DNA from: Octopus sinensis | Lineage: Eukaryota | Direction of reading: 5' to 3' | Assembly: GCF_006345805.1 (NCBI RefSeq) | Contig: NC_043023.1 | Location: 10,416,001 to 10,480,000, forward strand | Length of the DNA stretch: 64,000 bases | Part shown: piece after piece, positions 16,109 to 63,315 of the stretch | How positions within the stretch are numbered: position 1 is the first letter of the stretch | Layout: every line of letters begins with the position of its first letter | Position numbers and translations under genes: made by a program | The notes under the pieces: generated by a model | Database searches by the model: none | Seen by the model: the letters and a program-made list of their open reading frames with translations, nothing else | Told to the model about the DNA's origin: nothing

Positions 16109-16140
<32 letters not shown>

Positions 16141-16316: not shown

Positions 16317-16349
<33 letters not shown>

Positions 16350-16495: not shown

Positions 16496-16540
<45 letters not shown>

Positions 16541-16685: not shown

Positions 16686-16719
<34 letters not shown>

Positions 16720-16995: not shown

Positions 16996-16999
16996 TTCT

Positions 17000-24518: not shown

Positions 24519-26440
<1,922 letters not shown>

Positions 26441-28981: not shown

Positions 28982-30100
28982 ATGGGCAAAACAGCATTTG
29001 ATTGTGATATCTGTGGCAAGTCGTTCTCTCGGAAAGCTAAGTTAGTCATTCACGAACGTACTCATACAGGAGAAAAACCATATCACTGTGAAATCTGTGG
29101 TAAATCTTTCTCTCGAAACGAAAACTTAACTAGGCACAAGAGTGGTGTTCACACTGGAGAAGCACCATATCACTGTGAAATCTGTGACAAATCGTTTTCT
29201 CAAAACGATCACTTAACTATGCACAGGCGTGTTCATACAGGAGAAAAACCATATCACTGTGAAATCTGTGGTAAATCTTTCTCTCGAAACGATACCTTAA
29301 CCAAGCACAAGCGTGTTCATACAGGAGACAAGCCATATCACTGTGATATCTGTGGTAAAATATTATCTCAGAAAGGTAGCTTAGTCACTCACCGACGTAT
29401 TCATACAGGAGAGAAGCCATATCACTGTGATGTTTGTGGTAAATCATTTTTTGATATTCATCATTTAACTACTCACAAACGCATTCATACAGGTGAGAAG
29501 CCATATCGCTGTGATATCTGTGATATATCATTCTCTCAAAGGTATAACCTAACTAGGCACAAATACATTCATACAGGAGAAAAACCATATCACTGTGATA
29601 TCTGTGGTAAATCCTTTTCTCTAAACGATCACTTAACCAAGCACAAGCGTGTTCATACAGGAGAAAAACCATATCACTGTGAAATCTGTGGTAAATCTTT
29701 TTCTCAAAACGATACCTTAACTATGCACAGGCGTGTTCATACAGGAGAAAAACCATATCACTGTGAAATCTGTGGTAAATCTTTCTCTCAAAACGGTACC
29801 TTAACCAAGCACAAGCATTTTCATACAGGAGAAGGATCATATCACTGTGAAATCTGTGGTAAATCCTTTTCTCAAAACGATCACTTAACTATGCACAGGC
29901 GTGTTCATACAGGAGAAAAACCATATCACTGTGAAATCTGTGGTAAGTCTTTCTCTCGAAACGATACCTTAACCAAGCACAAGCATGTTCATACAGGAGA
30001 AAAACCATTTCACTGTGAAATCTGTGGTAAGTCTTTCTCTCGAAACGATACCTTAACCAAGCACAAGCATGTTCATACAGACAGAGAACACATTTCATGA
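28982..30100 (+). CDS. C2H2 zinc-finger protein, 13 fingers; leader interrupted by TAG
   Basis: 372-aa ORF ending HTDREHIS*; the paralogous start ATG (28898) is followed in frame by TAG at 28970. Confidence 0.8.
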
Positions 30101-31132: not shown

Positions 31133-31679
31133 TATATATATGAAGCTGTGTAACTTCTCATATATATTTGAAGGTGCATGGCTCAATCGTGAGTTCAATT
31201 TCCATTCATCTTCATCACATTGAACAATGTTAAAGGGTCAAAGTGAAATGCAGCCACATTTTCTCCACAAAACTACTTTAAAACGTTTTCCAATGGCTGA
31301 ATGACGAAACGTATTAATCTGGTTTCTGCCCTAAATATTCTGCTAAAGTAAGGATGCATCTTGTACACCAGCAAATACTCAGTGAAGTGCAAGTTAATTC
31401 ATAATTAGTCAACGCCGTTGCCAAACACTGAAGAATCTTGTTTAATAATTTGGCTAATTTAGTGAAATTCAAAAGTTACTCCAATACTGATTCGGTGTAA
31501 GGAATGGAAACCTACTTATTTCCCCTTTAATTTCTATTTACTTTCTTAAATCTCCCATACTGAAGGATTATGCTTATTAGAGCCATGCTATCCATGTCAA
31601 CCATGTACAATTACTAACATTTTCTCACACTAAACCATCCCTCTTACTAAAAATATCCTTCTTCTAGAGGATGGGGCTT

Positions 31680-32080
31680 AGTCAACGGGTACTTATTTTA
31701 TCGACACCTAAACGATGAAAGACCCAATCGACCATGGTGGAATTTGAACTGAGAACTGTGGGATGACGTCAGCGGTTAGGAAGCTGACCGGAAGAGGAAG
31801 AGTGCGTAAAGGGTTGGGGTGATTGCGCCCTTTTCGATCGGGGAAGTTGTGAGTGCAGGACGTGTCAGTGCTTCGACCAGATAAGGGATAGCATCTGCTA
31901 TTTTTAGCGTTTCGGGACGGGCCACGTGGAAGGGTACATTACTATCGGACAGATAAGGGTCAACGAAGAGAAGGTGAGTGTCTTACTTCTAATCTCCCGC
32001 ATTTACTACGAACGTAGCGACGGTCGAAATAGCGGTTAGTATTTCGTCCGGCGTGCTAACCATCCTGCCAGCTCGCCGCC
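31680..32080 (-). mobile_element. Antisense tRNA-type SINE (OR-like family) split by a 253-bp insert
   Basis: Flanks reverse-complement the intact SINE at 40326-40552; same arrangement at about 49740-50142 and 57167-57567. Confidence 0.8.
31757..32009 (+). promoter_or_regulatory. 253-bp CpG-rich insert: candidate promoter and exon 1 (copies 49819-50071, 57244-57496)
   Basis: TGACGTCA 31764, CCGGAAG 31788, CACGTG 31923, donor AAG|GTGAGT 31973/31974 (GTACGT in the other two copies); flanked by GAAC duplication. Confidence 0.65.
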
Positions 32081-32114
32081 CTGCAAAATACGTTAGATGC
32101 TTTGGGCAGATAGG

Positions 32115-32210
32115 TTGTCCAAGCGGTCACCCATCTAAGTACCCTGCAGGCTCGACATTGCTTCACTTCGGTGATCAGGCGAGACAAGGTGCAATCAGCA
32201 TTATATGGCT
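32115..32210 (-). pseudogene. 5S rRNA-derived sequence (copies 39775-39869, 50177-50272, 57602-57697)
   Basis: 39.8 kb copy reads gccatatcaagtagaatgcaccggttttcgtgcgatcatcgaagttaagcaatgtcgagcctaccaagtacttagatgggtgacc, matching about the first 95 nt of animal 5S; 3' end missing. Confidence 0.8.
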
Positions 32211-33989
32211 GTAATAACAATATTAACAGTTTCAAAACATTCGCATTTTCTGAAGGTGGTAAAGTAGAGTTTGGTCAGTCGGTCGTACAAGTTATTCTCC
32301 TTGATATAATTGTTTCTTCAGTTATCTGCTAGAAGCAAAGTTTTTATTAAAAGGCCTACTGATGGTGGTTTAGGGGACTTAGTAACTACCATCGACCTCT
32401 TGTTTTGACTGGGTCTTTATTTTATTCATCCCAAAGCAATGAAAGGTAAAATTGACATCGGTGGGATTTCGTTTCGGTAATTAAAGCAAACCAATGTATG
32501 TTTTATACATTCCCCTTTTTTATAAGTTTTTGTCAGTGATATTTCTGGTGTCAGATATTCTTTGATCTCGTCTGAAATTAATGATTTTTCTGGATGAATT
32601 TCTAGTTTTGTATCAAAACTGAAGGGGAAAGGACTATTTCGAAGATAACGAGTGAGATTAAATTGTGAGTGAAGTAATAATTTCTTCTTATTTTATATTA
32701 AATTTCGTTTTCTCTTTGTACAAACCTGTTTTGGTGGGAAATCTTAACAATATTCAAGATTTCTTTACATTTTCCCGATCATAAATGCTATTTGTAAACC
32801 TGCTGAAATTATGAAAATTAAGTTATTTATAGAAAAATATGTTTTTATGAAATTTGCTATAAATACCATTCAGAATGTGTATATTAGAATTCTATCGGAA
32901 TTTAATATGAAAATATAAATTTGGTGGGCTCGTACACGTGAAAGTTAAAATTTTTAACGAAATTCTGGACTTGTCTCAGTATGTATGTGTATTTGTGTGT
33001 CTTTGTGTTAGTGTTTCTTCCCCTCCCATTCCCGCTTAACGAACGGTGTTGGTATATTTACATCCCTGGAACTTTCGGCAGTAGACTGATAGAATGAATT
33101 CCTGGCATAAAAAAACAAGTACTTGGGTCGATCCAATCTCACTACAGATTCTTCAAGGAGATTCCCCAGCGTGGTGGCAGTCTAATGACAGAAACAACTA
33201 AAAGATAATAATAATAATAATAATTAATTCGTTTATTGGCCACAAGGGCTAACAAAAATCAATTATAACAAGCTATTTACCACACAACCACTCCTGTGCC
33301 TATAAAAAGATGTAGTAAAACTTTCACTGCTTTAATCTCTCTAATTCCTTATTATCTTGTATGTTTTACACCGTTGTTTCTCTTTCGTTTCAAATTTTCA
33401 GATGACATCTGCTACACAGAATTTTTACATATGCAACGTCATTAGAATGGAAAGTATTTTGAAGACTGAGCAAAGATGTTACACAAAACACGTATAACCC
33501 TGTTTCTATAAATATTTACTGAATTACTGCAAAATATATCTTCTGAACTCTGACATATATGTAGCAAAATTTCTCTTTATTGTCTGGAATACACAGAAAA
33601 TTATATTTGCATATTAATTAATCGTTTAGCATTAAACCTGGCCGTATCAGTCCCAAACGTTCAAGCTATTTTACGTTAAAACTGCCCACATCTGGCCTCT
33701 TCCACTCACCCTGCAATGTCATTCTAAACATAAACAATCACATCATTGAAATCTTAAAGCAATAAGATAATGAATGATTAATTCAGAAGAATTTGAATAA
33801 ATAATCATTAGATTTGACAGTGTAATCTGCGTGTTAATGAGTTAAAGTAATTAAGAAGGCAGTTTGCAGCATCTTCAGATATTAACAAAGATCACTTTTG
33901 ATGGAGATATATCAGTAGAAATATTTGATGTGAGCAATATATGAGAAGAAGGAAAACCTTTGTGTACTGTGACGAGAGAAAGGAAAATC

Positions 33990-35249
33990 ATGGAAAAGGA
34001 ATTTTGTGAAAGAACTGATTTTTCTGATGATGTAAACAATGAAAAGGGCAAAATATCATATGATTGTGATATTTGTGGTAAATTCTTCTCTAGGAAAGCT
34101 AGCTTACTCATTCACAAACGCATTCATACAGGAGAGAAGCCATATCATTGTGATATCTGTGGTAAGTCCTTCTCCCAGACTGGTTCTATAATTATTCACA
34201 AGCATAATGTTCACACAGGAGAAAAACCATATTGCTGCGAAATCTGTGGTAAATCATTCTCACAAGGTAATGACCTGACTAAGCACAGATGCGTTCATAC
34301 AGGTGAGAAGCCATGTCACTGTGATACCTGTGGTAGATCGTTCTTTCGAAATCATGTCTTGGCTAGGCACAGACGCATTCATACAGGAGAGAAGCCATAT
34401 CATTGTGATATCTGTGGTAAGTCCTTCGCTCAGACTAGTTCCGTGACTATCCACAAGCGTAACGTTCACACAGGAGAAAGACCATATCGCTGTGAAATCT
34501 GTGGTACATCATTCTCTCGAAATAATGGCTTGACTAGGCACAGACTTATTCATACAGGAGAGAAGCCATATCACTGTGATATTTGTGGTAAAACATTCAC
34601 TCAAAATAATGGTTTGACTAGGCACAGACGCATTCATACAGGAGAGAAGCCATATCACTGTGATATCTGTGGAAAATCATTCTCTGAAACTAGTCCCTTA
34701 AGTATTCACAAGTGTGTTGTTCACACAGGAGAAGAACTATATAACTGTGAATTCTGTGGTAAATCATTCTCTCAAAATAATGACTTGGTTAATCACAAAC
34801 GCATTCATACAGGAGTGAAACCATATCACTGTTATATTTGTGGTAAATCATTCTGTGAAGATATAAACTTAACTAATCACATACGTATTCACACAGGAGA
34901 GAAGCCATATCAGTGCTATATCTGTGGTAAATCATTCTCTCACGGACCCAATTTAGCTGTTCACAAACATGTTCATTCAAGTGTGAAGCCATATCACTGT
35001 GAAATCTGTGGTAAATCCTTCTCTCGAAACGATTACTTAACTTGCCATAAGCGTGTTCATACAGGAGAAAAGCCATATCACTGTGAAATCTGTGGTAAAT
35101 CATTCTCTCAAAATGAACAGTTACCTAAGCATATGCGTGTTCATACAGGAGAAAAGCCATATCACTGTGAAATCTGTGGTAAATCTTTCTCTCGAATTTA
35201 TAACTTAACTCGTCACAAACGTACTCACACAGGTGAAATGGCATATTGA
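33990..35249 (+). CDS. C2H2 zinc-finger protein, 14 diverse fingers
   Basis: First ATG in frame at 33990 ([14 protein letters not shown]...); 14 fingers; ends HTGEMAY*. Confidence 0.9.
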
Positions 35250-39530: not shown

Positions 39531-39869
39531 ATCTCTCTTACTAAAAATCTCTTCTAAAGGCACAACGCCTGAAATGTGGGGAGTTGGCTAGTCGATTACA
39601 TCGAGTCCAGTGTTTAACTGGTAACCATTTTATCAACCCCGAAAATATAAAAAGCAAAGTCGATCTTGACAGAATTTGAACTCAGAACGTCGCGAAACAT
39701 TTTGTCCAGTGCGCTAACGATTCTGCCAGTTCACTGCCTTAGAAATGTGAGTGAGATGCTTTCATCATGTACGCTTCCCAAGTGGTCACCCATCTAAGTA
39801 CTTGGTAGGCTCGACATTGCTTAACTTCGATGATCGCACGAAAACCGGTGCATTCTACTTGATATGGCT

Positions 39870-40268
39870 TTAATGGCCGTTGCCAGCGCCGCCCCGACTG
39901 GCCTCCATGCCGGTGGCACGTAAGAAGCACCATCCAATCGTGGCCGTTTGCCAGCCTCGCCTGGCACGTAAAAAGCACCATCCGATTGTGGCCGTTGCCA
40001 GCCTCGTCTGGCCTCCGTGCCGGTGGCACATAAAAAGCTCCATCTGATCATGGCCGTTTGCCCGCCTCGTCTGGCACCTGTGCCGGTGGCACGTAAAAGC
40101 ACCCACTACACTCACAGAGTGGTTGGCGTTAGAAAGGGCATCCAGCTGTAGAAACACTGTCAGATCAGACGGGAGCCTGGCGCAGCCTTCTGGCTTCACA
40201 ACCCCAATTGAATCGTCTAACCCATGCTAGCATGGAAAACGGACGTTAAACGATGAGGATGATGATGA
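39870..40268 (+). mobile_element. SINE-like / RTE 3'-UTR element
   Basis: gtgccggtggcac modules and cggacgttaaacgatga tail; absent at the paralogous position near 32210. Confidence 0.8.
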
Positions 40269-41290: not shown

Positions 41291-41712
41291 AGTTAAGTTA
41301 AGTTAATTTTTTGGCTCAAAAAGCAAAAAGCAAGGCCATGTAGGGGGACATGGAGTTATGTACAGGGAGGGTGTTCCTGCAAAGAGTTCAGGCCATTTGT
41401 GGTCAAGAGAGACTTTGAACCGAGCGGTCGTCGGCATCTTCACTATCCACGGATCCGCAACCCGGACGGAGAAAGCCCCTCCCCTTCGATTGAGATGAAA
41501 TCGTCGCAGGTAGAGCTTTTCGGAGTGACCCCACAGCCTACGCTCTGGAGCAGGAGTGAAGAACAGCTCTTTCGAGAGGTTACACTTTCCGCTTATGATG
41601 TTGTGAGCAAGAATGAGATCACCACGGTGTCGTCGTTTTTCTAGAGAATAAAGGTCGAGTGTCTTCAGCCTTTCTTCATAAGACAAATGCTTGAGACCAA
41701 GAACCACATGTA
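41291..41712 (-). mobile_element. CR1-clade 3' fragment, antisense
   Basis: KHLSYEERLKTLDLYSLEKRRHRGDLI... with (TTAAC)n tail. Confidence 0.9.
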
Positions 41713-42251
41713 TCGACAAAATAAAAGTTGGAATTTTTTAAAGCGAATTCTTAGTCTGTGTCAGAATGTATATTCGTGTGTGCAGTTTGGTCTCAGTGTT
41801 TCCACCTCTTCTATTCCCACTTAACAAATGGAGATGGTTAATTTACATTCCCGTAACTTAGCATTTTGGCAATAAACGGAGATTGAATGAGTTTCAGACA
41901 GAAAGGGGAAAATGAATAGATGACGGCGAATGTAAAGAAGACGGATCGCACCGCCTTTCGGTTATTATTTTCCTTTTTTGTTTGGGTATTTTCTACCCAC
42001 ATTTTCGACTGCGGAGATACCGAATCTGCGAAAAAAAAAATGGGCATTTCAGAATTTTAATTCCCCCGCCCCCCACCTCTTTTTCACTTTTTTTGGATTT
42101 TTTTTTTTTTTTTTTTGCGAAATACGTTGTAAAACACAGAAATTGTGATTCTGAAAAAAAAATTTGTAAAATTTCAATTTTACAAAAAAAAAGAAAAAAA
42201 ATTAAGAACCCTTCCCTCCTACTAAAATAGTAAACGTATCTAAAGAGAAAA

Positions 42252-43010
42252 CTCGACATGCTAGAAACAGCAGCTAAACAACGAGTCACTAATTCAAATT
42301 TTTATTCCACCTTCTCGACATGCTAGAAATAGAAGCTAAACAACGAATCACTAATTCAAATCTTTATTCCCCCACCACCCCCTTCTCGACATGCTAGAAA
42401 CAGCAGCTAAACAACGAATCACTAATTCAAATTTTTATTCCCCCACCACCCCCTTCTCGACATGCTAGAAACAGCAGCTAAACAACGAATCACTAATTCA
42501 AATTTTTATTCCCCCCACCACCCCCTTCTCGACATGCTAGAAACAGCAGCTAAACAACGAATCACTAATTCAAATTTTGATTCCCCCCACCACCCCTTCT
42601 CGACATGCTACAAAACAGCAGCTAAACAACGAATCACTAATTCAAATCTTTATTCCCCCCACCCCCCTTCTCGACATGCTAGAAACAGCAGCTAAACAAC
42701 GAATCACTAATTCAAATTTTTATTCCCCCCACCCCCCCTTATCGACATGCTAGAAACAGCAGCTAAACAACGAATCACTAATTCAAATTTTTATTCCCCC
42801 CACCCCCCTTCTCGACATGCTAGAAACAGCAGCTAAACAACGAATCACTAATTCAAATCTTTATTCCCCCCACCCCCTCTTCTCGACATGCTAGAAACAG
42901 CAGCTAAACAACGAATCACTAATTCAAATTTTTATTCCCCCCACCCTCTTCTCGACATGCTAGAAATAGCAGCTAAACAACGAATCACTAATTCAGATTC
43001 CACCCCACTC
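42252..43010 (+). repeat. About 71-bp minisatellite, 11 units
   Basis: ctcgacatgctagaaacagcagctaaacaacgaatcactaattcaaatttttattc(c)n at 42252, 42314, 42385, 42456, 42528, 42599, 42670, 42741, 42811, 42882, 42951. Confidence 0.95.
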
Positions 43011-43219: not shown

Positions 43220-43570
43220 TTATTGAAATCTTAAAGCAATAAGACAATGAATGATTAATTCAGAAGAAATTTCAATAAATAATCATTACATTTGACAGAG
43301 TAATCTCAATGTTAATGAGTTAAAGCAATTAAGAAGGCAGTTTGCAGCATCTTCAGATATTAACAAAGAACACTTTTGATGGAGATATATCAGTAGAACT
43401 ATTTGTTCAGAGCAATATACGAGAAGAAGGAAAACATTTGTGTACTGTGACGAGAGAAAGGGAAATTATGGAAAATGAATTATATAGGAGTGAAGATCAA
43501 TACAAAAAACAATCTGAAAAAATTGATTTTTCTAATGAGGAAAAGAATGAAAAGGGCAAAACAGCATTTT
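43220..43570 (+). pseudogene. Leader-only ZNF fragment, cut just before finger 1
   Basis: [34 protein letters not shown] followed by unrelated sequence. Confidence 0.85.
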
Positions 43571-44111
43571 TTCCCTAACCTTTTAGGCTCGTGGCTGCTA
43601 GTGCCATGTGGAAATCTCCAATATAAACTCTGTAAGGTGGTCGTGTTACGAAGGGCATCCAACCACAAAAACCAAGCTAAAATAGAGATGGAGCCTGAAC
43701 AGCCCTTCAGTTGGTTACCTCCTTTCAAACCATCCAACCCATGCCAGTGTGTAAAATGGAATTTAAATGATGATGAAGTAATAATTTTAAATTTGTATAG
43801 ACATCTTGTAGTATGCTGTTCAAAGCCTGCTCACTGTATTTGGCTATCTGATGTCATACCCTTGCATACAAGCTTGTCTCTAGCAACCTTCTCCAGCTGA
43901 GCATCCCTAATCTTCCAGGCTCATAGGGGCTGCATAAGAGCATCCAGCACACCCTGTAAAGTGGTTGCATTATGAAGGGCATCCAGCCATAGAAACTATA
44001 CCAAAACAGAAATGAACCCTGAACAGCCCTCAGCTGGTTAGCACCTTTCTAACCATCCAAGCCATGCCAGTATGTAAAATGGACTTGAAATGATGATGAA
44101 GTAATAATTCT

Positions 44112-44493: not shown

Positions 44494-45616
44494 GTATAAA
44501 CCTTTTGTGCTATTTAAAGCCTGCTCACTGTATTTGGCTATCTGATGTCATCAACAGTCAGGATTTAAATGACACTGGACTTACTTGAGGCATTCTTTCA
44601 TCTCAGTCGAGACAAGAATATGAGAAGAAGAGAAGAGAAATAGAATTTACAAACTACTATTTAGTATGATTGCTTCAACACATCATTCATTAGTGACTTG
44701 TCAAAAGGTACCTCATATTTAAAGTTTCTGTTTTGCTTAATCCAATTAGAATTCATTTTCGTATTTGGTTTATGTCAAGCTTCTTTGAGTTTCCATCTAC
44801 CAAATCCTCTCCCAAGGCTTTGATTGGCCACTCTGGGACTGAACCCAGGACCATGTGGTTGGGAAGCCAACTTCTTACCACACAACCATCCCTGCACTTC
44901 TACAGCCATGTCTATATAAAAATGTAGTAAAACTTTCACTGTTTTAATCTCTCTAATTCCTAATTATCTTGTATGTTTTACACTGTTGTTTCTCTTTCGT
45001 TTCAGATTATCAGATGACATCTGCTTCACAGGATTTTTACATAAGCAACGTCATTAGAATGGAAAGTCTTTTGAAGACTGAGCAAAGATGTTATACAAAA
45101 CACGTATAACCCTGTTTCTATAAATATTTACTGAATTACTGCAAAATATATCTGCTGAACTGAAAGAAGTAATCACATCACTGAAATCTCAAATCTATGA
45201 GATAATCCATGATTCATTGAAAACAATTTGAATAAATAAGCATTACATTTGAGAAAGGAATCTGAATGCTTAAGGGTATTTCAATAAAATATTTACAAGT
45301 TCTTTATTCAAACCTGCCAGATCCTACCACTCACACCCACCCTACAATGTCATTCTAAACGTAAAGAATCATATCGTTGAAATCTTAAATCTGTAAGATA
45401 ATGAATGATTAATTAGGAGGAATTTGAATAATCATTACATTTGACAGAGTAATCTGAATGTTAATGAGTTAAAGCAATTAAGAAGGCAGTTTGCAGCATC
45501 TTCAGATATTAACAAAGATCACTATTGATGGAGATATATCAGTAGAAATATTTGTTAAGAGCAACATACGAGAAGAAGGAAAACCTTTGTGTACTGTGAC
45601 GAGAGAAAGGAAAATT

Positions 45617-47557
45617 ATGGAAAATGAATTATATCGGAGTGAAGTTGAATGTAAAAGAGAGTCTGAAGAGATTGATTTTTCTGATGAGGAGAAGAATGAA
45701 AAGGGCAAAACAGCATTTGATTGTGATATCTGTGGGAAGTCGTTCTCTCGGAAAACTAAGTTACTCATTCACGGACGTACTCATACAGGAGAAAAACCAT
45801 ATCACTGTGAAATCTGTGGTAAATCTTTCTCTCGAAACGAAAACTTAACTAGGCACAAAAGTAGTGTTCACACTGGAGAAGCACCATATCACTGTGATAT
45901 CTGTGACAAATCGTTTTCTCAAAACGATCACTTAATTATGCACAGGCGTGTTCATACAGGAGAAAAACCATATCACTGTGAAATCTGTAGTAAATCTTTC
46001 TCTCGAAACGATACCTTAACCAAGCACAAGCGTGTTCATACAGGAGAAAAACCATATCACTGTGAAATCTGTGGTAAATCTTTCTCTCGAAACGAAAACT
46101 TAACTAGGCACAAGAATGGTGTTCACACAGGGGAAGCACCATATCACTGTGAAATCTGTGACAAATCTTTTTCTCAAAACGATCACTTAACCATGCACAA
46201 GCGTGTTCATACAGGAGAAAAACCATATCACTGTGAAATCTGTGGTAAATCTTTCTCTCGAAACGATACCTTAACCAAGCACAAGCATGTTCATACAGGA
46301 GAAAAACCATATCACTGTGAAATCTGTGACAAATCTTTCTCTCTAAACGATCACTTAACCAAGCACAAGCATGTTCATACCGGAGAAAAACCATATCACT
46401 GTGATAAATCTTTCTCTCTGAACAATACCTTAACCAAGCACAAGCATGTTCATACAGGAGAAAAACCATATCACTGTGAAATTTGTGACAAATCTTTCTC
46501 TCGAAACGATAATTTAACCATGCACAGGCGTGTTCATACAGGAGAAAAACCATATCACTGTGAAATCTGTGGTAAATCTTTCTCTCTAAACGATCACTTA
46601 ACCATGCACAGGCGTGTTCATACAGGAGAAAAACCATATCACTGTGAAATCTGTGGTAAATCTTTCTCTCGGAACGATACCTTAACCAAGCACAAGCATG
46701 TTCATACAGGAGAAAAACCATATCACTGTGAAATCTGTGACAAATCTTTCTCTCGAAACGATAACTTAACCATGCACAGGCGTGTTCATACAGGAGAAAA
46801 ACCATATCACTGTGAAATCTGTGGTAAATCTTTCTCTCTAAACGATCACTTAACCAAGCACAAGCATGTTCATACCGGAGAAAAACCATATCACTGTGAA
46901 ATCTGTGATAAATCTTTCTCTCTGAACAATACCTTAACCAAGCACAAGCATGTTCATACAGGAGAAAAGCCATATCACTGTGAAATCTGTGACAAATCTT
47001 TCTCTCGAAACGATACCTTAGCCAAGCACAAGCATGTTCATACAGGAGAAAAAGCATATCATTGTGAAATCTGTGGGAAATCTTTCTCTCGAAACGATCA
47101 CTTAACCATGCACAGGCGTGTTCATAGAGGAGAAAAACCATATCACTGTGAAATCTGCGGTAAATCTTTCTCTCGAAACGATCACTTAACTATGCACAGG
47201 CGTGTTCATACAGGAGAAAAACCATATCACTGTGAAATCTGTGGTAAATCTTTCTCTCGAAACGATCACTTAACCATGCACAGGCGTGTTCATACAGGAG
47301 AAAAACCATATCACTGTGAAATCTGTGGTAAATCTTTCTCTCGAAACAATCACTTAACCATGCACAGGCGTGTTCATACAGGAGAAAAACCATATCACTG
47401 TGATATCTGTGGTAAATCCTTTTCTCAAAACGATACCTTAACTAGGCACAAGATTAGTGTTCATACAGGAGAAGTACCATATCACTGTGAAATCTGTTGT
47501 CAATCTTTCTCTCGAAACGATACCTTAATCAAGCACAAGCGTGTTCATACAGGATAA
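45617..47557 (+). CDS. C2H2 zinc-finger protein, 22 units (21 intact)
   Basis: First ATG at 45617; unit 9 has a 9-nt deletion (YHCDKSF); stop is GAA>TAA in a linker. Confidence 0.9.
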
Positions 47558-48161
<604 letters not shown>

Positions 48162-51100
48162 GGAATAGATTCACTTCCCAAGTTACAGACATTGTTTATG
48201 AGTTTTACTTTTCAAGCACAACATCCAAATTTTGAAAGTTTCTACTACCATAACAAATGCATCTGTGTCTTACCAAGAAGTTTATAAAGAGCAAAGGAAT
48301 GCTTCTCAGTAAACAACTCTAGACTTGTTTCTTTGCTTGTGAATCAGTGGTCACGTCTACAAATGATGGTGTCCCTGAGTCTTGTGAAAGTGATTCAGAA
48401 AACAATTATAATAATAATATTTTGTGTATTCTAAATGATCTTGACATTGTTTTTGACTTTACATAAAATATTCTTTACATTCTACTGTTGTTTTATTGTC
48501 ATTTATTTACAAGTATTATAAATTTTATTGGTAAAATATTTTTCTGGGAATGAATTACAATTTATAATATTGCTTCTATGGGAAATTATTGCTTTGCTTT
48601 ATGAGTTTTCACTTTAGGAGCAATCTCCAGGGAGAAATTAACTCATATATCAAGGCATTATTGTGTTTGATATTATTTTGGCACAAGGGCAGCAATTTCA
48701 GGGGAAGGAGTAAGTTGAATAACCACATGGATCAGCATGTGTGCTTTTTACATGAACTAGCACAAATGCTTCTTACAGGGAGTGGCATTGCACGATATAT
48801 CTATATATAGAATGCTGAATTTATCCGTGTGTGTGGCAGGGTTGCAGCCTTCAACTAACACTTTCTCTACCGAGACGCTGTGGTGAAAGTTGACCAAAAT
48901 TGAGAGGATTATAGATGAAGGCTTGCTCTTCCTTCCATAGAAAAAATTCAAATCGCACCATGTCAACACCAAAAATTATTTAGATCAGAAAGGTGTTTTT
49001 TTTTCTATGAAAATCCCTATTTTTTACGATTCTTTGACTGCTGTGTCACCGTTTTTCGGTGTATTTCAACCAGAAAACTGTTCACTTAAAGAGAATAACA
49101 AGCTACATAATGCAAGATTTTTACTTTTCAAAAATTCCAATTCTAAATGGTCGAAAAGAAAACAAACCCGAGCAACGCTGGGCGATACTTCTAGTATATA
49201 TATGAAGCTGTGTAATTTCTCATATATATTTGAAGGTGCATGGCTCAATCGTGAGTTCAATTTCCATTCGTCTTCATTACATTGAACAATGTTAAAGGGT
49301 CAAAGTGAAATGCAGCCACATTTTCTCCACAAAACTACTTTAAAACGTTTTCCAATGGCTGAATGACGAAACGTATTAATCTGGTTTCTGCCCTAAATAT
49401 TCTGGTAAAGTAAGGATGCGTCTTGTACACCAGCAAATACTCAGTGAAGTGCAAGTTAATTCATAATTAGTCAACGCCGTTGCCAAATACTGAAGAATCT
49501 TGTTTAATAATTTGGCTAATTTAGTGAAATTCAAAAGTTACTCCAATACTGATTCGGTGTAAGGAATGGAAACCTACTTATTTCCCCTTTAATTTCTATT
49601 TACTTTCTTAAATCTCCCATACTGAAGGATTATGCTTATTAGAGCCATGCTATCCATGTCAACCGTGTACAATTACTAACATTTTCTCACACTAAACCAT
49701 CCCTCTTACTAAAAATATCCTTCTTCTAGAGGATGGGGTTTAGTCAACTGGTACTTATTTTATCGACCCCGAAACGATGTAAGGCACAATCGACCGTGGT
49801 GGAATTTGAACTGGGAACTGTGGGATGACGTCAGCGGCTAGGAAGCTGACCGGAAGAGGAAGGGTGCGTACAGGGTTGGGGCGATGGCGCCCTTTTCGAT
49901 CGGGGAAGTTGTGAGTGCAGGACGTGTCAGTGCTTCGACCAGATGAGGGATAGCAGCTGCTATTTTTAGCGTTTCGGGACGGGCCACGTGGAAGGGTACA
50001 TTACCATCCGACAGATATGGGTCAACGAAGAGAAGGTACGTGTCTTACTTCTAATCTCCCGCATTCACTACGAACGTAGCGACGGTCGAAATAGCGGTTA
50101 GCATTTCGTCCGGCCTGCTAACGATCCTGCCAGCTCGCCGCCCTGCAAAATACGTTAGATGCTTTGGGCACATAGGTTGTCCAAGCGGTCACCCATCTAA
50201 GTACCCTGCAGGCTGGACATTGCTTCACTTCGGTGATCAGGCGAGACAAGGTGCAATCAGCATTATATGGCTGTAATAACAATATTAACAGTTTCAAAAC
50301 ATTCGCATTTTCTGAAGGTGGTAAAGTAGAGTTTGGTCAGTCGCTCGTAGAAGTTATTCTCCTTATAATTATTTATTCAGTTATCTGCTAGGAGCAAAGT
50401 TTTTATTAAAAGGCCTACTGATGGTGGTTTGTGGGACTTAGTATCTACCATCGACCTCTTGTTTTGAATGGGTCTTTATTTTATTCATCCCAAAGCAATG
50501 AAAGGTAAAATTGACATCGGTGGGATTTCGTTTCGGTAATTAAAGCAAACCAATGTATGTTTTATACATTCCCTTTTTTATAAGTTTTTGTCAGTGATAT
50601 TTCTGGTGTCAGATATTCTTTGATCTCGTCTGAAATTAATGATTTTTCTTGATGAATTTCTACTTTTGTATCAAAACTGAAGGGGAAAGGACTATTTCGA
50701 AGATAACGAATGAGATTAAATTGTGAGTGAAGTAATAATTTCTTCTTATTTTATATTAAATTTCGTTTTCTCTTTGTACAAACCTGTTTTAGTGGGAAAT
50801 CTTAACAATATTCAAGATTTCTTTACACTTTCCCGATCATAAATGCTATTTGTAAACCTGCTGAAATTATGAACATTAAGTTATTTATAGAAAAATATGT
50901 TTTTATGAAATTTGCTACAAATACCATTCAGAATGTGTATATTAGAATTCTATCGGAATTTAATATGAAAATATAAATTTGGTGGGCTCGTACACATGAA
51001 AGTTAAAATTTTAAAAGAAATTCTGGATTTGTCTCAGTATGTATGTGTATTTGTGTGTCTTTGTGTTAGTGTTTCTTCCCCTCCCATTCCCGCTTAACGA

Positions 51101-52203
51101 ACGGTGTTGGTATATTTACATCCCTGGAACTTTCGGCAGTAGACTGATAGAATGAGTTCCAGGCATAAAAAACAAGTAAGTACTGGGGTCGATCCAATCT
51201 CACTACAGATTCTTCAAGGAGATTCCCCAGCGTGGTGGCAGTCTAATGACAGAAACAAGTAAAAGATAATAATAATAATAATTAATTCGTTTATTAGCCA
51301 CAAGGGCTAACAAAAATCAATTATAACAAGCTACTTACCACACAGCCACTACTGCGCCTATAAAAAGATGTAGTAAAACTTTCACTGTTTTAATCTCTCT
51401 AATTCCTAATTATCTTGTATGTTTTACACTGTTGTTTCTCTTTCGTTTCAGATTATCAGATGACATCTGCTTCACAGGATTTTTACATAAGCAACGTCAT
51501 TAGAATGGAAAGTATTTTAAAGACCAAGCAAAGATGTTATACAAAACACGTATAACCCTGTTTCTATGAATATTTACTGAATTACTGCAAAATATATCTT
51601 CTGAACTCTGACATATATGTAGCAAAATTTCTCTTCTTTATTGTCTGGAATACACAGAAAATTATATTTGCATATTAATTAATCATTTAGCATTTTAACT
51701 AGCACAAATATTGTGACCTCTCACACTCACCCTGCAGTGTCAATTTAAACATAAACAATCAAATCACCGAAGTCTCAAAGCTATGAGATAATCCATGATT
51801 AATTCAAAACAATATGAATAAATAAGCATTACATTTCACAAAGGAATCTCAATGCTAAACGGTTAAACTGGCCATATTTTTGTGTGTTTTATATTCATAC
51901 TAGCCAGATCCCACCCCTCACACCCACCCTACAAGGTCATTCTAAAAGTAAACAATCACAACATTGAAATCTGAACATGATAACATAATGAATGATTAAT
52001 TCAGAAGAATTTCAATAAACATTCTATTTGACAGAGTAATCTGAATGTTAATGAGTTAAAGCAATTAAGAAGGCAGTTTGCAGCATCTTCAGATATTAAC
52101 AAAGATCACTTTTGATGGAGATATATCAGTAGAAATGTTTGTTCAGAGCAATATACGAGAAGAAGGAAATCCTTTGTGAACTGTGACGAGAGAAAGGAAC
52201 GTT

Positions 52204-53421
52204 ATGGAAAATGAATTATATCGGAGTGAAGTTGAATGTAAAAGAGAGTCTGAAGAAATTGATTTTTCTGATGAGGAAAAGAATGAAAAGGGCAAAACAT
52301 CATTTGATTGTGATATCTGTGGCAAGTCGTTCTCTCAGAAAGCTAACTTAGTCATTCACGAACGTACTCATACAGGAGAAAAACCATATCACTGTGAAAT
52401 CTGTGGTAAAACTTTTTCTCAAAACAATCACTTAACTAGGCACAAGCATGTTCATACAGGAGAAAAACCATATCACTGTGAAATCTGTGACAAATCTTTT
52501 TCTCAAAATAATCAGTTAACTATGCACAGGCGTGTTCATACAGGAGAAAAACCATATCACTGTGAAATCTGTGACAAGTCTTTTTCTCAAAACCATCACT
52601 TAACTATGCATAGGCGTGTTCATACAGGAGAAAAACCATATCACTGTGAAATCTGTGGTAAATCTTTCTCTCGAAACAATAACTTAACCAAGCACAAGCA
52701 TGTTCATACAGGAGAAAAACCATATCATTGTGAAATCTGTGGTAAATCTTTCTCTCGAAACAATCACTTAACTAGGCACAAGAGTTTTGTTCATACAGGA
52801 GAAAAACCATATCACTGTGAAATCTGTGACAAATCTTTTTCTCAAAATGATCACTTAACTATGCACAGGCGTGTTCATACAGGAGAAAAACCATATCACT
52901 GTGAAATCTGTGACAAATCTTTTTCTCAAAACGATCACTTAACTATGCATAGGCGTGTTCATACAGGAGAAAAACCATATCACTGTGAAATCTGTGGTAA
53001 ATCTTTCTCTCGAAACAATAACTTAACCAAGCACAGGCATGTTCATACAGGAGAAAAACCATATCATTGTGAAATCTGTGGTAAATCTTTCTCTCGAAAC
53101 GAATGCTTAACCAAGCACAAGCGTGTTCATACAGGAGAAATGCCATATCACTGTGAAATCTGTGGTAAATCTTTCTCTCGAAACGAATGCTTAAACAAGC
53201 ACAAGCGTGTTCATACAGGAGAAAAACCACATCACTGTGAAATCTGTGGTAAATCCTTTTCTCGAAACGATAACTTAACCAAGCACAAGCGTGTTCATAC
53301 AGGAGAAAAGCCATATCACTGTGAAATCTGTGGTAAATCTTTTTCTCAAAACGATCACTTAACTATGCACAGGCGTGTTCATACAGGAGAAAAGCCATAT
53401 CACTGTGAAATCTGTGATTAA
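52204..53421 (+). CDS. C2H2 zinc-finger protein, 13 complete fingers; premature TAA within finger 14
   Basis: ATG at 52204; gat TAA tct at 53419 where paralogous fingers have aaa; frame stays open to TGA 53794. Confidence 0.85.
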
Positions 53422-54337
<916 letters not shown>

Positions 54338-55390: not shown

Positions 55391-56601
55391 AGGGTCTTCA
55401 CAAGTGTCACAAGCAGGAAGGTATGCACAGGTGGACTGACTACATCCCAGAAAACAACTTCCGTCACTTTCCAGGGGGAAAAATTAGAAGTAGTTAATAG
55501 CTTCCGTTATCTAGGTGACCAAGTCAGTAGTGGGGGTGGGTGCGCTGAGAGTGTAACTGCTGGAATAAGAATAGCCTGGGCAAAGTTTAGGGAGCTCTTA
55601 CCTCTGCTGGTGACTAAAGACCTCTTGCTCAGAGTAAAAGGCAGACTGTATGATGCATGTGTACGAACTCCCATGCTACATGGCAGTGAAACATGGGCCG
55701 TGACTGCTGAGGACATGCGTAAGCTCATGAGGAATTAAGCCAGTATGTTCCGATGGATGTGTAATGTCAGTGTACTTACTCGACAGAGCGTTAGTTCCTT
55801 GAGAGAAATGTTGTACCTAAGAAGCATCAGTTGTGGTGTGCAAGAGAGACGATTGTGCTGGTATGGTCATGTGGCGAGAATGGATGAAGATAGGTGTGTG
55901 AGAAAGTGCCAATCCCTAGCAGTTGAGGAAACCCGTGGAAGAGGTAGACCCAGGAAAACCTGGGACAAGGTGGTGAAGCACGACCTTCGAACGTTAGGTC
56001 TCACCATGGAAATGACTAGAGACCGAGACCTATGGAAGTATGCTGTGCGTGAGAAGACCCGGCAAGACTAGTGAAGCCATAACCCGTGGCCCCTACCTGG
56101 GACGTAGTCAGTCCACCTGTGCATACCTTCCTGCTTGTGACACTTGTGAAGACCTGTTGAGGCAAGTGAAAATCAAATCAAACCAAATCAAAATAGATGA
56201 ACATCAATGGAATTTGTATCCTTGTGGTACCAGTGCCGGTGGCACATAAGAAAACACCGAAAACACAACCCGAGCGTGGCCGTCTGCCAGCCTCGTCTGG
56301 CACCTGTGTCGGTGGCACATAAAAAACACCATCCGAGCGTGGCCGTCTGTCAGCCTCGTCAGGCACCTGTGTTGGTGGCACATAAAAAACACCATCAGAG
56401 CGTGGCCGTCTGCCACCTGTGTCGTTGGCACATAAAATCACCCACTACACTCTCGGAGTGGTTTGCGTTAGGAAGGGCATCCACCTGTAGAAACACTGCC
56501 AGATCTGACTGGCCTGGTGCAGCCTTCGGGCTCCCCAGACCCCAGTTGAACCGTCCAACCCATGCTAGCATGGAAAGCGGACGTTAAACGATGATGATGA
56601 T
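55391..56601 (+). mobile_element. 5'-truncated RTE with an inverted 5' piece
   Basis: ORF2 C-terminus (FRYLGDQ...GRPRKTW), modular 3' UTR, (GAT)n tail; inserted in the TA run at the Helitron 3' end; paralogs at about 31133 and 49195 lack it. Confidence 0.9.
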
Positions 56602-58847
56602 ATATATATATATATATATGAAGTTATTATGTAACTTCTCATATATATTTGAAGGCGCATGGCTCAATCGTGAGTTCAATTCCTGTCATCTTCATCACAT
56701 TGAACAATGTTAAAGGTTAAAGGGTCAAAGCGAAATGCAGCCACATTTTCTCCACAAAACTACTTTAAAACGTTTTCCAATGGCTGAATGACGAAACGTA
56801 TTAATCTGGTTTCTGCCCTAAATATTCTGGTAAAGTAAGGATGCATCTTGTACACCAGCAAATACTCAGTGAAGTGCAAGTTAATTCATAATTAGCCAAC
56901 GCCGTTGCCAAACACTGAAGAATCTTGTTTAATAATTTGGCTAATTTAGTGAAATTCAAAAGTTACTCCAATACTGATTCGGTGTAAGGAATGGAAACCT
57001 ACTTATTTCCCCTTTAATTTCTATTTACTTTCTTAAATCTCCCATACTGAAGGATTATGCTTATTAGAGCCATGCTATCCATGCCAACCGTGTACAATTA
57101 CTAACATTTTCTCACACTAAACCATCCCTCTTACTAAAAATATCCTTCTTCTAGAGGATGGGGTTTAGTCAACTGGTACTTATTTTATCGACCCCGAAAC
57201 GATGAAAGACCCAATCGACCATGGTGGAATTTGAACTGAGAACTGTGGGATGACGTCAGCGGCTAGGAAGCTGACCGGAAGAGGAAGGGTGCGTACAGGG
57301 TTGGGGCGATTGCGCCCTTTTCGATCGGGGAAGTTGTGAGTGCATGACGTGTCAGTGCTTCGACTAGGTGAGGGATAGCATCTGCTATTTTTAGCGTTTC
57401 GGGACGGGCCACGTGGAAGGGTACATTACCATCTGACAGATATGGGTCAACGAAGAGAAGGTACGTGTCTTACTTCTAATCTCCCGCATTCACTACGATC
57501 GTAGCGACGGTCGAAATAGCGGTTAGCATTTCGTCCGGCCTGCTAACGATCCTGCCAGCTCGCCGCCCTGCAAAATACGTTATATGCTTTGGGCAGATAG
57601 GTTGTCCAAGCGGTCACCCATCTAAGTACCCTGCAGGCTGGACATTGCTTCACTTCGGTGATCAGGCGAGACAAGGTGCAATCAGCATTATATGGCTGTA
57701 ATAACAATATTAACAGTTTCAAAACATTCGCATTTTCTGAAGGTGGTAAAGTAGAGTTTGGTCAGTCGCTCGTAGAAGTTATTCTCCTTCATATAATTAT
57801 TTCTTCAGTTATCTGCTAGAAGCAAAGTTTTTATTAAAAGGCCTACTGATGGTGGTTTGGGGGAGTTAGTAACTACCACCGACCTCTTGTTTTGAATAGG
57901 TCTTTATTTTATTCATCCCAAAGCAATGAAAGGTAATATTGACGTCGGTGGGATTTCGTTTCGGTAATTAAAGCAAACCAATGTATGTTTTATACATTCC
58001 CCTTTTTTATAAGTTTTTGTCAGTGATATTTCTTGTGTCAGATATTCTTTGATCTCGTCTGAAATTAATGATTTTTCTGGATGAATTTCTACTTTTGTAT
58101 CAAAACTGAAGGGGAAAGGACTATTTCGAAGATAACGAGTGAGATTAAATTGTGAGTGAAGTAATAATTTCTTCTTATTTTATATTAAAATTCGTTTTCT
58201 CTTTGTACAAACCTGTTTTAGTGGGAAATCTTAACAATATTCAAGATTTCTTTACATTTTCCCGATCATAAATGCTATTTGTAAACCTGCTGAATTTATG
58301 AAGATTAAATTATTTATAGAAAAATACGTTTTTATGAAATTTGCTATAAATACCATTCAGAATGTGTATATTAGAATTCTATCGGAATTTAATATGAAAA
58401 TATAAATTTGGTGGGCTCGTACACATGAAAGTTAAAATTTTAAAAGAAATTCTGGATTTGTCTCAGTATGTATGTGTATTTGTGTGTCTTTGTGTTAGTG
58501 TTTCTTCCCCTCCCATTCCCGCTTAACAAACGGTGTTGGTATATTTACATCCCTGGAACTTTCGGCAGCAGACTGATAAAATGAGTGCCAGGCATAAAAA
58601 ACAAATACATATATATATATATATCATGGTGATCTATGTAAAGGGCATCTATACTGCTCTGCATAAAAAACACCCATACAAGGACCATGTGAGAAGATCT
58701 CAATACAATCTCTAAAGTGGTGGGCATTAAGAAGAGTGTCCAGCTGTAGAAAGCAATCTAAATCAGGCAGGAACTGGGGGCAGCACTCCTGTTTGCCAGC
58801 ACAGGTCAAACCAACCAACCTAGGGAAGCATGGTAAATGGACATTAA

Positions 58848-60464: not shown

Positions 60465-60737
60465 TGCCTTTCTGAGCGAACAATTTGCCACAGATAACAC
60501 AGTGATATGACTTCTCACCTGTATGGACGCGTCTGTGCCTAGTCAAGCCTTGATTTCGAGAGAATGATCTACCACAGGTATCACAATGATATGGCTTCCC
60601 TCCTATATGAATACGTCGGTGAGTGAGTAGGTTAGTTTTCCGAGAGAATAATTTACCACAGGTATCACAATCATATGATGTCTTGCCCTCTTCATTCTTT
60701 ACATCATCAGATAAATCAATTATTTTAGATAGCCTTC
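60465..60737 (-). pseudogene. Inverted ZNF coding fragment (leader end plus 2.5 fingers)
   Basis: IIDLSDDVKNEEGKTSYDCDTCGKLFSRKTNLLTHRRIH...CVICGKLFAQ; absent at the paralogous site near 27800. Confidence 0.9.
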
Positions 60738-62026
60738 CCACTGTATTTGGCTATCTGATGTCATCTACAGTATGGATATAAATGACACTGGATTTATTTG
60801 AGGAATTCCTTCATGTCAGTAGAGTTTAAAAAATGAGAGAAAGAGAAAGAAAATAGAATTTCCAAGACTAGTATTCACTATGATTGTTTCAACCCATCGT
60901 GCATCTGTGCCTCGCAGGTGAGATTCTGTACGAACAGTTGTGGGGCATCCTTTGATGCAGACATGTCCCATCAGGTGACTTATCAAATGGTTCCTCATAT
61001 TTAAATTTCTGTTTTGCTTATTTCGATAAGAATTCATTTTGGTACTTGGGACATGTCAAGCTTCTTTCAGTTTCCATCAACCATATCTTTGATTGGCCAC
61101 TCTGGGACTGAACCCAGGACCGTGTGGTTGGGAAGCCAACTTCTTACCACACAACCATCCCTGCACTTCTACAGCCATGTCTATATAAAAATGTAGTAAA
61201 ACTTTCACTGCTTTAATCTCTCTAATTCCTAATTATCTTGTATGTTTTACACTGTTGTTTCTCTTTCGTTTCAGATTATCAGATGACATCTGCTTCACAG
61301 GATTTTTACATAAGCAACGTCATTAGAATGGAAAGTCTTTTGAAGACTGAGCAAAGATGTTATACAAAACACGTATAACCCTGTTTCTATGAATATTTAC
61401 TGAATTACTGCAAAATATATCTGGGGAACTCTGACATATATGTAGCAAAATTTCTCTTCTTTATTGTCTGGAATACACAGAAAATTATATTTGCATATTA
61501 ATTAATCATTTAGCATTTAAACTAGCACAAATATTCTGACCTCTCACACTCACCCTGCCGTGTCAGTTTAAACATAAACAATCAAATCACTGAAGTCTCA
61601 AAGCTATGAGATAATCCATGATTAATTCAAAACAATATGAATAAATAAGCATTACATTTCACAAAGGAATCTCAATGCTAAACGGTTAAACTGGCCATAT
61701 TTTTGTGTGTTTTATATTCATACTAGCCAGATCCCACCCCTCACACCCACCCTACAAGGTCATTCTAAAAATAAACAATCACAACATTGAAATCTGAACA
61801 TGATAACATAATGAATGATTAATTCAGAAGAATTTCAATAAACATTCTATTTGACTGATTAATCTGAATGTTAATGAGTTAAAGCAATTAAGAAGGCAGT
61901 TTGCAGCATCTTCAGATATTAACAAAGATCACTTTTGATGGAGATATATCAGTAGAAATATTTGTTCAGAGCAATATACGAGAAGAAGGAAAACCTTTGT
62001 GTACTGTGACGAGAGAAAGGAAAATT

Positions 62027-63004
62027 ATGGAAAATGAATTATATCGGAGTGAAGTTGAATGTAAAAGAGAGTCTGAAGAAATTGATTTTTCTGATGAGGA
62101 ACACAACGAAAAGGGCAAAACATCATTTGATTGTGATATCTGTGGCAAGTCGTTCTCTCAGAAAGCTAAGTTAGTCATTCACGAACGTACTCATACAGGT
62201 GAAAAACCATATCACTGTGAAATCTGTGGTAAATCTTTCTCTGAAAATGGTCATTTAACTACCCACAAACGCATTCATACAGGTGAGAAGCCATATCGCT
62301 GTGATATCTGTGATAAATCATTCTCTCAAAGTTCTAACTTAACCAATCACAAGCGTGTTCATACGGGAGAAAAACCATATCACTGTGAAATCTGTGGTAA
62401 ATCTTTCTCTCGAAACGAAAGCTTAACGAGGCACAAGAGTGGTGTTCACACAGGAGAGGCACCATATCACTGTGAAATCTGTGACAAATCTTTTTCTCAA
62501 AACGATCACTTCACTATGCACAGGCGTGTTCATACAGGAGAAAAACCATATCACTGTGAAATCTGTGGTAAATCTTTCTCTCGAAACAAAAGCTTAACTA
62601 GGCACAGGCGTGTTCATACAGGAGAAAAACCATATCACTGTGAAATCTGTGGTAAATTTTTCTCTGAAAACGGTACCTTGACCAAGCACAAGCGTGTTCA
62701 TACAGGAGAAGAACCATATCACTGTGAAATCTGTGGTAAATCTTTCTCTCGAAACGATCACTTAACCATGCACAGGCGTGTTCATACAGGAGAAAAACCA
62801 TATCACTGTGAAATCTGTGGTAAATCTTTCTCTCGAAACGATACCTTAACCAAGCACAAGTGTGTTCATACAGGAGAAAAACCATATCACTGTGAAATCT
62901 GTGGTAAATCTTTCTCTCGAAACGATACCTTAACCAAGCACAAGTGTGTTCATACAGGGGAGAAGCCATATCATTGTGATATCTCTGGTAAATCATTTTC
63001 TTAA
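62027..63004 (+). CDS. C2H2 zinc-finger protein, 10 fingers
   Basis: First ATG at 62027; stop CAA>TAA inside a broken 11th unit (CDISGK). Confidence 0.9.

Positions 63005-63315
<311 letters not shown>

Follow-up and report, generated by a model that had tools for sequence, protein, structure and literature searches.

A young cluster of poly-C2H2 zinc-finger genes in Octopus sinensis with minisatellite-like finger turnover and lesion-bearing copies

A 64,000-nucleotide (nt) stretch of the Octopus sinensis genome (NCBI RefSeq assembly GCF_006345805.1, contig NC_043023.1, positions 10,416,001 to 10,480,000 of the forward strand; hereafter the window, in whose own coordinates all positions are given) contains an open reading frame (ORF) at 45617–47557 that encodes an array of C2H2 zinc fingers behind a short leader. 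This gene, here called g45, is probably a member of a young, tandemly duplicated, lineage-specific and effector-less poly-C2H2 zinc-finger (ZNF) family that evolves by birth-and-death, with further copies at 29, 52 and 62 kb (g29, g52 and g62) and an older relative at 34 kb (g34). The finger units are mosaics of a limited set of variants, their DNA-contact codons are much more variable than the backbone, and all four genes, g29, g45, g52 and g62, bear disabling or truncating lesions. The contact-residue signature is an older layer that has since been copied around, whereas the newest layer of variation shows neither visible constraint nor a focus on contact sites. The locus works like a young poly-zinc-finger (poly-ZF) paralogue cluster, a kind already well described in animal genomes.

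g45 encodes a leader and 22 tandem finger units

The features of g45 are as follows, with finger units numbered from f1 at the N-terminal end:

45617–47557, forward strand: g45 ORF, 646 amino acids (a.a.), a 33-a.a. acidic leader and 22 C2H2 finger units; ATG at 45617, TAA at 47555–47557
45617–45715, forward strand: leader, 33 a.a., acidic
45716–47563, forward strand: finger units f1–22, all in register, with a length of 84 nt in 18 of them, 87 nt in f2, f5 and f21 (H-X4-H) and 75 nt in f9
45800–46309, forward strand: three-finger tandem duplication, f2–4 and f5–7, 95.3% identical over 255 nt
46310–46972, forward strand: shuffled young units (f8–9 and f14–15, 98.1% identical; f10 and f13, 98%)
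46394–46468, forward strand: broken finger 9, which has lost E-I-C, and with it the second zinc-ligand Cys, through an in-frame deletion of 9 nt
47057–47392, forward strand: run of four near-identical fingers, f17–20, helix RNDHLTM or RNNHLTM, mutual identity 94–99%
47555–47557, forward strand: private nonsense codon in the finger 22 linker, TGEKP to TG*KP
47564–48161, forward strand: decayed 3′ third, comprising seven dead finger units interrupted by stops and frameshifts
47621–47623: stop shared by g45, g52 and g62 (LLNH*YIH)
48159–48161: ancestral stop (HTDREHIL*)

Only C2H2 families matched the g45 ORF in Pfam (zf-C2H2, PF00096, E = 1.7e-114; zf-H2C2_2, PF13465, E = 1.7e-149), and the fingers follow the tandem C-X2-C-X12-H-X3-4-H pattern with TGEKP-type linkers that is typical of the poly-ZF class. 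In 21 of the 22 fingers the zinc ligands are complete and the linker is of the TGEKP type, finger 9 being broken. If still translated, g45 would be a predicted 21-finger sequence-specific DNA binder. Tandem Repeats Finder reported a period of 84 nt with 28.1 copies and 82% matches, extending to 48141, and the head-to-tail arrangement, high similarity, higher-order structure and mosaic composition of the units are those of a coding minisatellite, a class with units of 10–100 nt and array lengths that differ between individuals. A 345-a.a. antisense ORF across the array (46104–47141, reverse strand) was rejected as a gene and regarded as a by-product of the repeat, since one antisense frame of the 84-nt unit is free of stops.

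Database searches placed g45 only in general terms. A search with the whole protein returned generic vertebrate ZNFs (best identity 53–58%) and the Octopus bimaculoides ZFP2 (40%), giving neither a close relative nor a family name, and an exact-product look-up of seven ORFs of the window found none of them on record as an annotated protein. For the leader and the 80 a.a. upstream, no Pfam family was matched, and a word-index protein search with the 47-a.a. leader region yielded no candidate. When the leader and finger 1 together were searched exhaustively with HMMER, the many summed finger matches swamped the result: multi-finger proteins dominated the listing and no match covering the leader was seen.

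The genes are copies of a large duplicated segment

The window contains seven C2H2-encoding 84-nt repeat arrays and a two-finger remnant:

1465–2331, reverse strand: C2H2 array
7782–8540, reverse strand: C2H2 array
28982–30100, forward strand: array of g29, the 29-kb gene
33960–35249, forward strand: array of g34, the 34-kb gene
45491–47557, forward strand: array of g45, the gene under study
52183–53421, forward strand: array of g52, the 52-kb gene
60523–60675: two-finger remnant
61901–63004, forward strand: array of g62, the 62-kb gene

The relatives of g45 and the sequences duplicated along with them are:

28898–30100, forward strand: g29, 13 fingers, extending to the ancestral C-terminus, leader interrupted
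33990–35249, forward strand: g34, older intact relative with a homologous leader, 13 recognisable fingers and a finger DNA diversity of 0.25
52204–54337, forward strand: g52, 13 fingers, a stop within finger 14, more in-frame fingers, the shared stop and a decayed tail
62027–63315, forward strand: g62, 10 fingers, a private TAA and a shortened decayed tail
43342–43578, forward strand: orphan copy of the leader region, approximately 90% identical to 45377–45718, ending exactly where finger 1 is due
31133–33122, 49195–51178 and 56611–58608: three copies, 96–97% identical, of a 2-kb non-coding block, 1–2.3 kb downstream of g29, g45 and g52

The finger counts given in the initial annotation for the 29, 45, 52 and 62 kb genes (13, 22, 13 and 10) are exact for the ORFs. 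The flanks of the paralogues are 95–98% identical on the 3′ side and 86–98% on the 5′ side, and the three 2-kb blocks shared downstream indicate that the duplicated unit was far larger than the gene. Tandem duplication of gene-sized segments gave rise to the copies at 29, 45, 52 and 62 kb. The finger DNA diversity within g45, g52 and g62 is 0.105–0.175, as compared with 0.20–0.25 in g29, g34 and the two reverse-strand genes, so that the former arrays are younger than their neighbours. The older intact g34 serves as a model for the ancestral architecture, and the orphan leader copy is a dead gene fragment; it lies directly downstream of a 71-nt tandem repeat with 9.7 copies (42310–42999).

The finger units are shuffled mosaics

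We compared the 58 fingers of g29, g45, g52 and g62. The initial annotation had described helix positions −1, +2, +3 and +6 as combinatorially variable, and the residue spectra agree with this: R30, Q19, L6, E2 and D1 at −1; D31, N8, E6 and G4, plus others, at +2; H22, T16, N11, K3, S3, C2 and Q1 at +3; and K22, M19, R9, I4, T3 and N1 at +6. The near fixation of Asn at +1 and Leu at +4 was likewise confirmed (50 and 57 of the 58 fingers, respectively), and all five helices that had been quoted (RNDHLTM, LNNTLTK, RNENLTR, RNECLTK and ENGTLTK) were found. In total, the 58 fingers contain 36 distinct helices.

The higher-order blocks are real. Besides the duplications f2–4/f5–7 and f8–9/f14–15 listed above, f12, within the shuffled units, is 99% identical to f7 (46226–46309) just upstream of them, f11 is 95–99% identical to f17–20, and in g52 the fingers f3–5 and f7–9 are 98.0% identical. 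The 84-nt unit had been described as near-identical from copy to copy; the unit length holds, but the near-identity was generous, as unit pairs within g45 average 89.6% identity, with 12% of them reaching at least 95%, and the average falls to 84.9% across the four genes. Of the 231 informative pairs of sites in the 84-nt unit, 121 fail the four-gamete test, indicating that the units are mosaics. Variation outside the contact residues is also considerable, including Gly/Asp two residues past the second Cys, Lys/Arg at +8, Arg/His at +9, and the linker.

Within each copy, the finger array behaves as a coding minisatellite, and since its unit is exactly 28 codons, out-of-register pairing of units preserves the reading frame. 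One to three fingers at a time were duplicated as blocks. In-register unequal exchange or slippage, together with gene conversion between units, probably altered the number of fingers and reassorted a limited set of helices.

The helices of this family (e.g. at 47057–47392) have unusual habits, with Asn nearly fixed at +1 and Gly and Asp alternating after the second Cys. Met at +6 (19 of the 58) nearly always occurs with Arg-Arg at +8/+9, and Lys at +6 occurs with Lys-His or Lys-Arg. A textbook recognition-code reading of the helices gave G/T-rich triplets (such as GTG, NGG and GAG), but was judged too crude for a comparison with the window and was given no weight.

Contact-codon diversification belongs to an older layer of variants

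We next consider the contact codons (−1, +2, +3 and +6) and the remaining codons of the unit, using either all 58 finger units or a core set of 49. In pairwise comparisons, the proportions of nonsynonymous and synonymous differences (pN/pS) are 0.37/0.19 for contact codons, as against 0.083/0.27 for the remainder. With parsimony counts on a neighbour-joining tree, the contact codons differ from the others in Fisher tests (P = 8e-7 for the 58 units, 8e-6 for the 49 core units and 0.03 for g45 alone), with a nonsynonymous-to-synonymous rate ratio (ω) at contact codons of 1.98 over the 58 units and of 4.34 in the core set (P = 0.014), and a backbone ω of 0.22–0.24 (P < 1e-7). Contact codons are therefore more variable than the rest after synonymous correction, and the finding that the initial annotation had named as fatal to its own idea, contact positions no more variable than others, was not obtained.

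Since recombination between units recounts old polymorphisms, a tree-based ω is unsafe, and each variant in the 49 core units was therefore counted once, which is robust to recombination. Variants shared by at least two units comprise 11 nonsynonymous and 1 synonymous (N11:S1) at contact codons, as compared with N10:S15 at the other codons; thus, the spread variants are synonymous-biased in the backbone and nearly all amino-acid-changing at the contact positions. Variants private to one unit are N3:S1 at contact codons and N18:S6 elsewhere. Outside the contact codons, the shared and private sets differ (P = 0.021), and the nonsynonymous enrichment at contact codons is seen among shared variants only (P = 0.020). 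The private substitutions have an ω of approximately 0.77, which is compatible with 1, while a value of 0.22 is rejected (P = 0.002–0.004), and their density is 1.0 per codon in the contact and other classes alike. Some alter structural residues; for example, the first aromatic position of g52 f12 has changed from Tyr to His, and +4 of g62 f5 from Leu to Phe. No sign of ongoing selection at contact sites was found among the private substitutions of the core units. The annotated pattern of a homogenised backbone with diversified contact residues is thus present in the pN/pS values and Fisher tests, but does not extend to the newest substitutions, which are evenly spread.

The shared variants are consistent with a variant pool filtered by past selection on a working DNA-binding protein, which would have kept the zinc ligands, the hydrophobic core and the linker while leaving the specificity residues free, or favoured, to change.

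Two other potential indicators of selection were set aside. The intact 1.9-kb ORF was rejected as evidence because approximately 13 private substitutions are too few: neutrality predicts approximately 0.6 stops and 1–2 indels, the latter from the indel-to-substitution ratio of the dead tail (approximately 3:23), and 1 stop and 1 in-frame indel were seen, rendering the open g45 ORF uninformative. The paralogue dN/dS values for the collinear leader, finger 1 and fingers 2–4 (ratios 0.3–1.1) were not usable, since only 5–12 differences per pair leave them without power.

Every copy carries lesions

The 3′ third of three of the genes died before they were duplicated. The tails of g45, g52 and g62 have the LLNH*YIH stop, a second stop and one frameshift in common at homologous positions, in addition to private lesions, indicating that this region was already dead before the duplication of the three genes. 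In g52, the shared stop is at 53794–53796. Collinearity of the g45 tail with the 3′ fingers of g34, which are intact (34653–35232; 80.7% identity), points to an ancestor resembling g34.

Each gene has also acquired a nonsense codon of its own: besides the g45 TAA in the finger 22 linker, g52 has a TAA within finger 14 (53419–53421), g62 has a TAA at 63002–63004, and g29 has a TAG at leader codon 25 (28970–28972). In g29, a Lys codon four codons after the TAG has privately become ATG (28982), opening a 372-a.a. ORF just before finger 1; the pair could be a coincidence or a rescue of translation. The dead 3′ third in three genes, the private nonsense codon in each, the lost zinc ligand and the unconstrained newest substitutions suggest that the copies are now being lost, probably to different degrees.

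All four young copies might be dead pseudogenes, in which the array is a neutral minisatellite and the contact pattern is a relic of a few ancestral finger types that were copied and recombined; we regard this as decidedly improbable. The lesions in each gene would fit it, but hardly any sequence ahead of the shared stop is lost through the g45 and g62 stops. Finger 9 of g45, for its part, lacks a zinc-ligand Cys, but the other 21 fingers are complete in ligands and linker. The private ω of approximately 0.77 and the private hits on conserved structural residues in g52 f12 and g62 f5 are as expected for dead genes, yet this sample is too small to exclude an ω of approximately 0.4–0.5, and the strongly synonymous-biased shared variants of the backbone indicate that the expansion took place at least partly under selection. 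The missing annotated proteins and the leader without relatives in protein databases are also in keeping with death of the copies.

Misassembly of the 84-nt repeats, by which the unit number, the block duplications and some of the stops and frameshifts would be erroneous, is very improbable. Long near-identical tandem repeats and segmental duplications of 90–98% identity are error-prone, and single-base indels such as those in the tails are a typical class of long-read error, but errors would not yield lesions common to three paralogues at homologous positions. Moreover, most unit pairs are below 95% identity and the units can be uniquely placed, and the four genes have different, internally consistent architectures.

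Comparison with PRDM9 and other finger-array systems

For a comparison that tolerates recombination, we used the statistic of Baker et al. 2017 (supplement, PMC5519329), namely the share of within-array amino-acid diversity that falls on the DNA-binding positions V11, V12, V15 and V18. The DNA-binding-site share and finger DNA diversity are:

Human PRDM9: share 0.687, diversity 0.079
Mouse PRDM9: share 0.910, diversity 0.034
g45: share 0.336, diversity 0.105
g52: share 0.332, diversity 0.130
g62: share 0.330, diversity 0.175
g29: share 0.268, diversity 0.203
g34 and the two reverse-strand genes: share 0.28–0.31, diversity 0.21–0.25

Slowly evolving vertebrate arrays have shares of approximately 0.17–0.20, and PRDM9 arrays span finger DNA diversities of 0.016–0.21, a range that includes g45. 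The young arrays are thus homogenised to a PRDM9-like degree, while their binding-site focus is approximately half that of human PRDM9 and slightly above that of the older neighbours. Since the older arrays of the window themselves reach 0.27–0.31, the concentration on contact sites is a general property of poly-ZNFs here, slightly sharpened in the young genes. The label PRDM9-like suits the finger diversity, the blocks and the mosaics, and seems to suit the degree of contact-site focus less well.

Finger turnover and positive selection on the contact positions are both established for PRDM9, invertebrate orthologues included (Oliver et al. 2009, PMC2779102). g45 resembles PRDM9 in the 84-nt unit, the finger DNA diversity (0.105 versus 0.079 in human), the block duplications, the mosaic units and the variation at −1, +3 and +6. 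However, PRDM9 is a single gene, expressed in meiosis and specifying recombination hotspots, with PR/SET, KRAB-related and SSXRD domains N-terminal to the fingers, whereas g45 is one of several paralogues, lacks KRAB, SSXRD and SET, varies substantially at non-contact positions and has a partly dead array. The absence of KRAB and SET, as initially annotated, was borne out in the window by Pfam and tblastn. When four PRDM9-like proteins that contain SET were run by tblastn against the whole window, only their finger parts matched; Pfam gave no KRAB match (PF01352), and tblastn with KRAB-ZNF queries and an approximate KRAB consensus gave only chance-level matches outside the fingers (E = 2.7–6). 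Because the defining domains were looked for and are absent within the window, the g45 locus is neither PRDM9 nor a KRAB zinc-finger protein (KZFP) gene.

The likeness to young vertebrate KZFP and poly-ZF clusters, in which finger gain and loss and positive selection at contact residues are established for young paralogues (Emerson and Thomas 2009, PMC2604467), and to the cyprinid FiNZ-ZNFs (Wells et al. 2023, PMC10547256) is broader. These also form tandem gene clusters, their recent paralogues differ in finger number by whole-finger duplication, deletion and inactivation, their contact residues are the most variable, and pseudogenes are frequent among them; correspondingly, the young tandem paralogues here have 13, 22, 13 and 10 fingers and diversified contacts (Fisher P = 8e-7). 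In contrast, the g45 family has no KRAB, SCAN, BTB or FiNZ-like domain, but only the 33-a.a. acidic leader, for which no relatives were detected. KRAB recruits TRIM28/KAP1, and binding and repression of transposable elements (TEs) is a KZFP feature.

Among coleoid cephalopods, C2H2 expansions with many-finger genes and tandem-duplication clusters in repeat-rich, AT-rich genomes have been described, and such clusters have been published as characteristic of the genomes of octopuses (Jiang et al. 2022, PMC9795677; Holzinger et al. 2025, PMC12513265). These studies worked at the gene level, through trees and expression, as opposed to the finger-unit turnover, decayed tails and per-codon selection seen at the present locus.

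Is the cluster engaged in an ongoing arms race?

The initial annotation went further and inferred a cephalopod system that rapidly generates new DNA specificities, possibly against the abundant TEs. On this view, g45 and its paralogues would be active members of an ongoing PRDM9- or KZFP-like arms race, with continual selection for new specificities, probably against young transposons or satellites. The evidence renders this unlikely, although several observations are in its favour. Contact-codon ω exceeds 1 in the core set, but the newest substitutions show no excess there, with 1.0 variant per codon in the contact and other classes, and their ω is compatible with 1. The g45 finger DNA diversity lies within the PRDM9 range, but its binding-site share is half that of human PRDM9 and near the older neighbouring arrays. 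The 1.9-kb ORF is open, but this is expected by chance in so young an array, and every copy has lesions; the g45 private substitutions (N8:S5) may be counted on the side of the arms race. The window is TE-rich, with a reverse transcriptase ORF and several short repeat families, and a genome-wide analysis found TE consensus sequences to be enriched for the motifs predicted for octopus ZNFs (Wells et al. 2023, PMC10547256). No effector domain was found by Pfam on the ORF or by tblastn of the window. The TE proposal restates a standing hypothesis on octopus ZNFs (PMC10547256, PMC12513265), with a TE arms race in cephalopods having been posed as an open question (Holzinger et al. 2025, PMC12513265).

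The preferred account, a young birth-and-death family with copies now being lost, has several points against it. The private stops of g45 and g62 are only 22 and 8 codons upstream of the shared stop, in or beside an already broken finger, so they may cost nothing and both genes may be fully functional. The g45-only private substitutions have an ω of approximately 0.4, hinting at some remaining constraint. At multi-allelic contact sites, the private-variant test counts too few of the new hits, and it relies on only 28 substitutions in one haploid assembly. The tree-based ω is distorted by inter-unit recombination, with counts inflated at already polymorphic sites, and the sole significant ω above 1 (P = 0.014) is fragile. 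Finally, ORFs without an annotated protein record could mean pseudogenes or simply an unannotated genome.

Other features of the window

The window is AT-rich (G+C 32–46% outside microsatellites), and microsatellites are abundant. Very long ones, which give long spurious ORFs rich in Tyr, Ile and Cys, are listed here with the other features:

10415–10841: (AT)n, 0.43 kb
13753–13858: degenerate, interstitial telomere-like repeats (AACCCT/TTAGGG type)
16086–16996: (GTAT)n, 0.9 kb
20542–22396, forward strand: non-LTR retrotransposon-like retroelement with two ORFs, the first with a reverse transcriptase domain (RVT_1, E = 3e-24)
24543–26437: (TA)n, approximately 1.9 kb
39758–39875, reverse strand: full-length 5S rRNA match (Rfam RF00001, 60 bits), adjoining 48- and 62-nt tandem repeats at 39914–40103
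41303–41719, reverse strand: likely C-terminal fragment of a retroelement, judging from its translation
757–1060, 7143–7448, 39964–40263 and 56315–56601: repeat of approximately 300 nt related to the stretch adjoining the 5S match, 77–92% identity

The best database relatives of the reverse transcriptase ORF are unnamed proteins that are 62% identical or less. The 5S-like match was the only one in an Rfam scan of the window, and a tRNA scan of the window found no tRNAs; the element may be a 5S gene or pseudogene beside an element resembling a short interspersed nuclear element (SINE), or a 5S-derived SINE.

Implications

The locus exemplifies a known mode of evolution, in which poly-ZNF genes are built and discarded by tandem gene duplication and in-frame turnover of 84-nt units, and this mode keeps the fold while varying the base-contact residues. 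Its illustrative value is that one window holds g34 as an older, intact relative beside the expanded young copies g45, g52 and g62, together with a dead 3′ tail and an orphan leader.

Albertin et al. 2015 reportedly noted a lineage-specific C2H2 expansion in coleoid cephalopods. If the present family is expressed and polymorphic, it would be a tractable locus for the question of whether an arms race against repeats lies behind the cephalopod C2H2 expansion (Holzinger et al. 2025, PMC12513265), and would invite the further question of how a protein consisting of fingers alone can act. It is rather doubtful, but conceivable, that a family of zinc fingers alone, with no known effector, uses PRDM9-style minisatellite turnover to obtain new long DNA specificities, with at least g45 an expressed 21-finger protein under diversifying selection and engaged with young TEs or satellites. 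If this finger-only arms race were true, it would represent an independent invertebrate counterpart of the KZFP/PRDM9 strategy, in which the silencing or recruiting mechanism would be carried by the short acidic leader.

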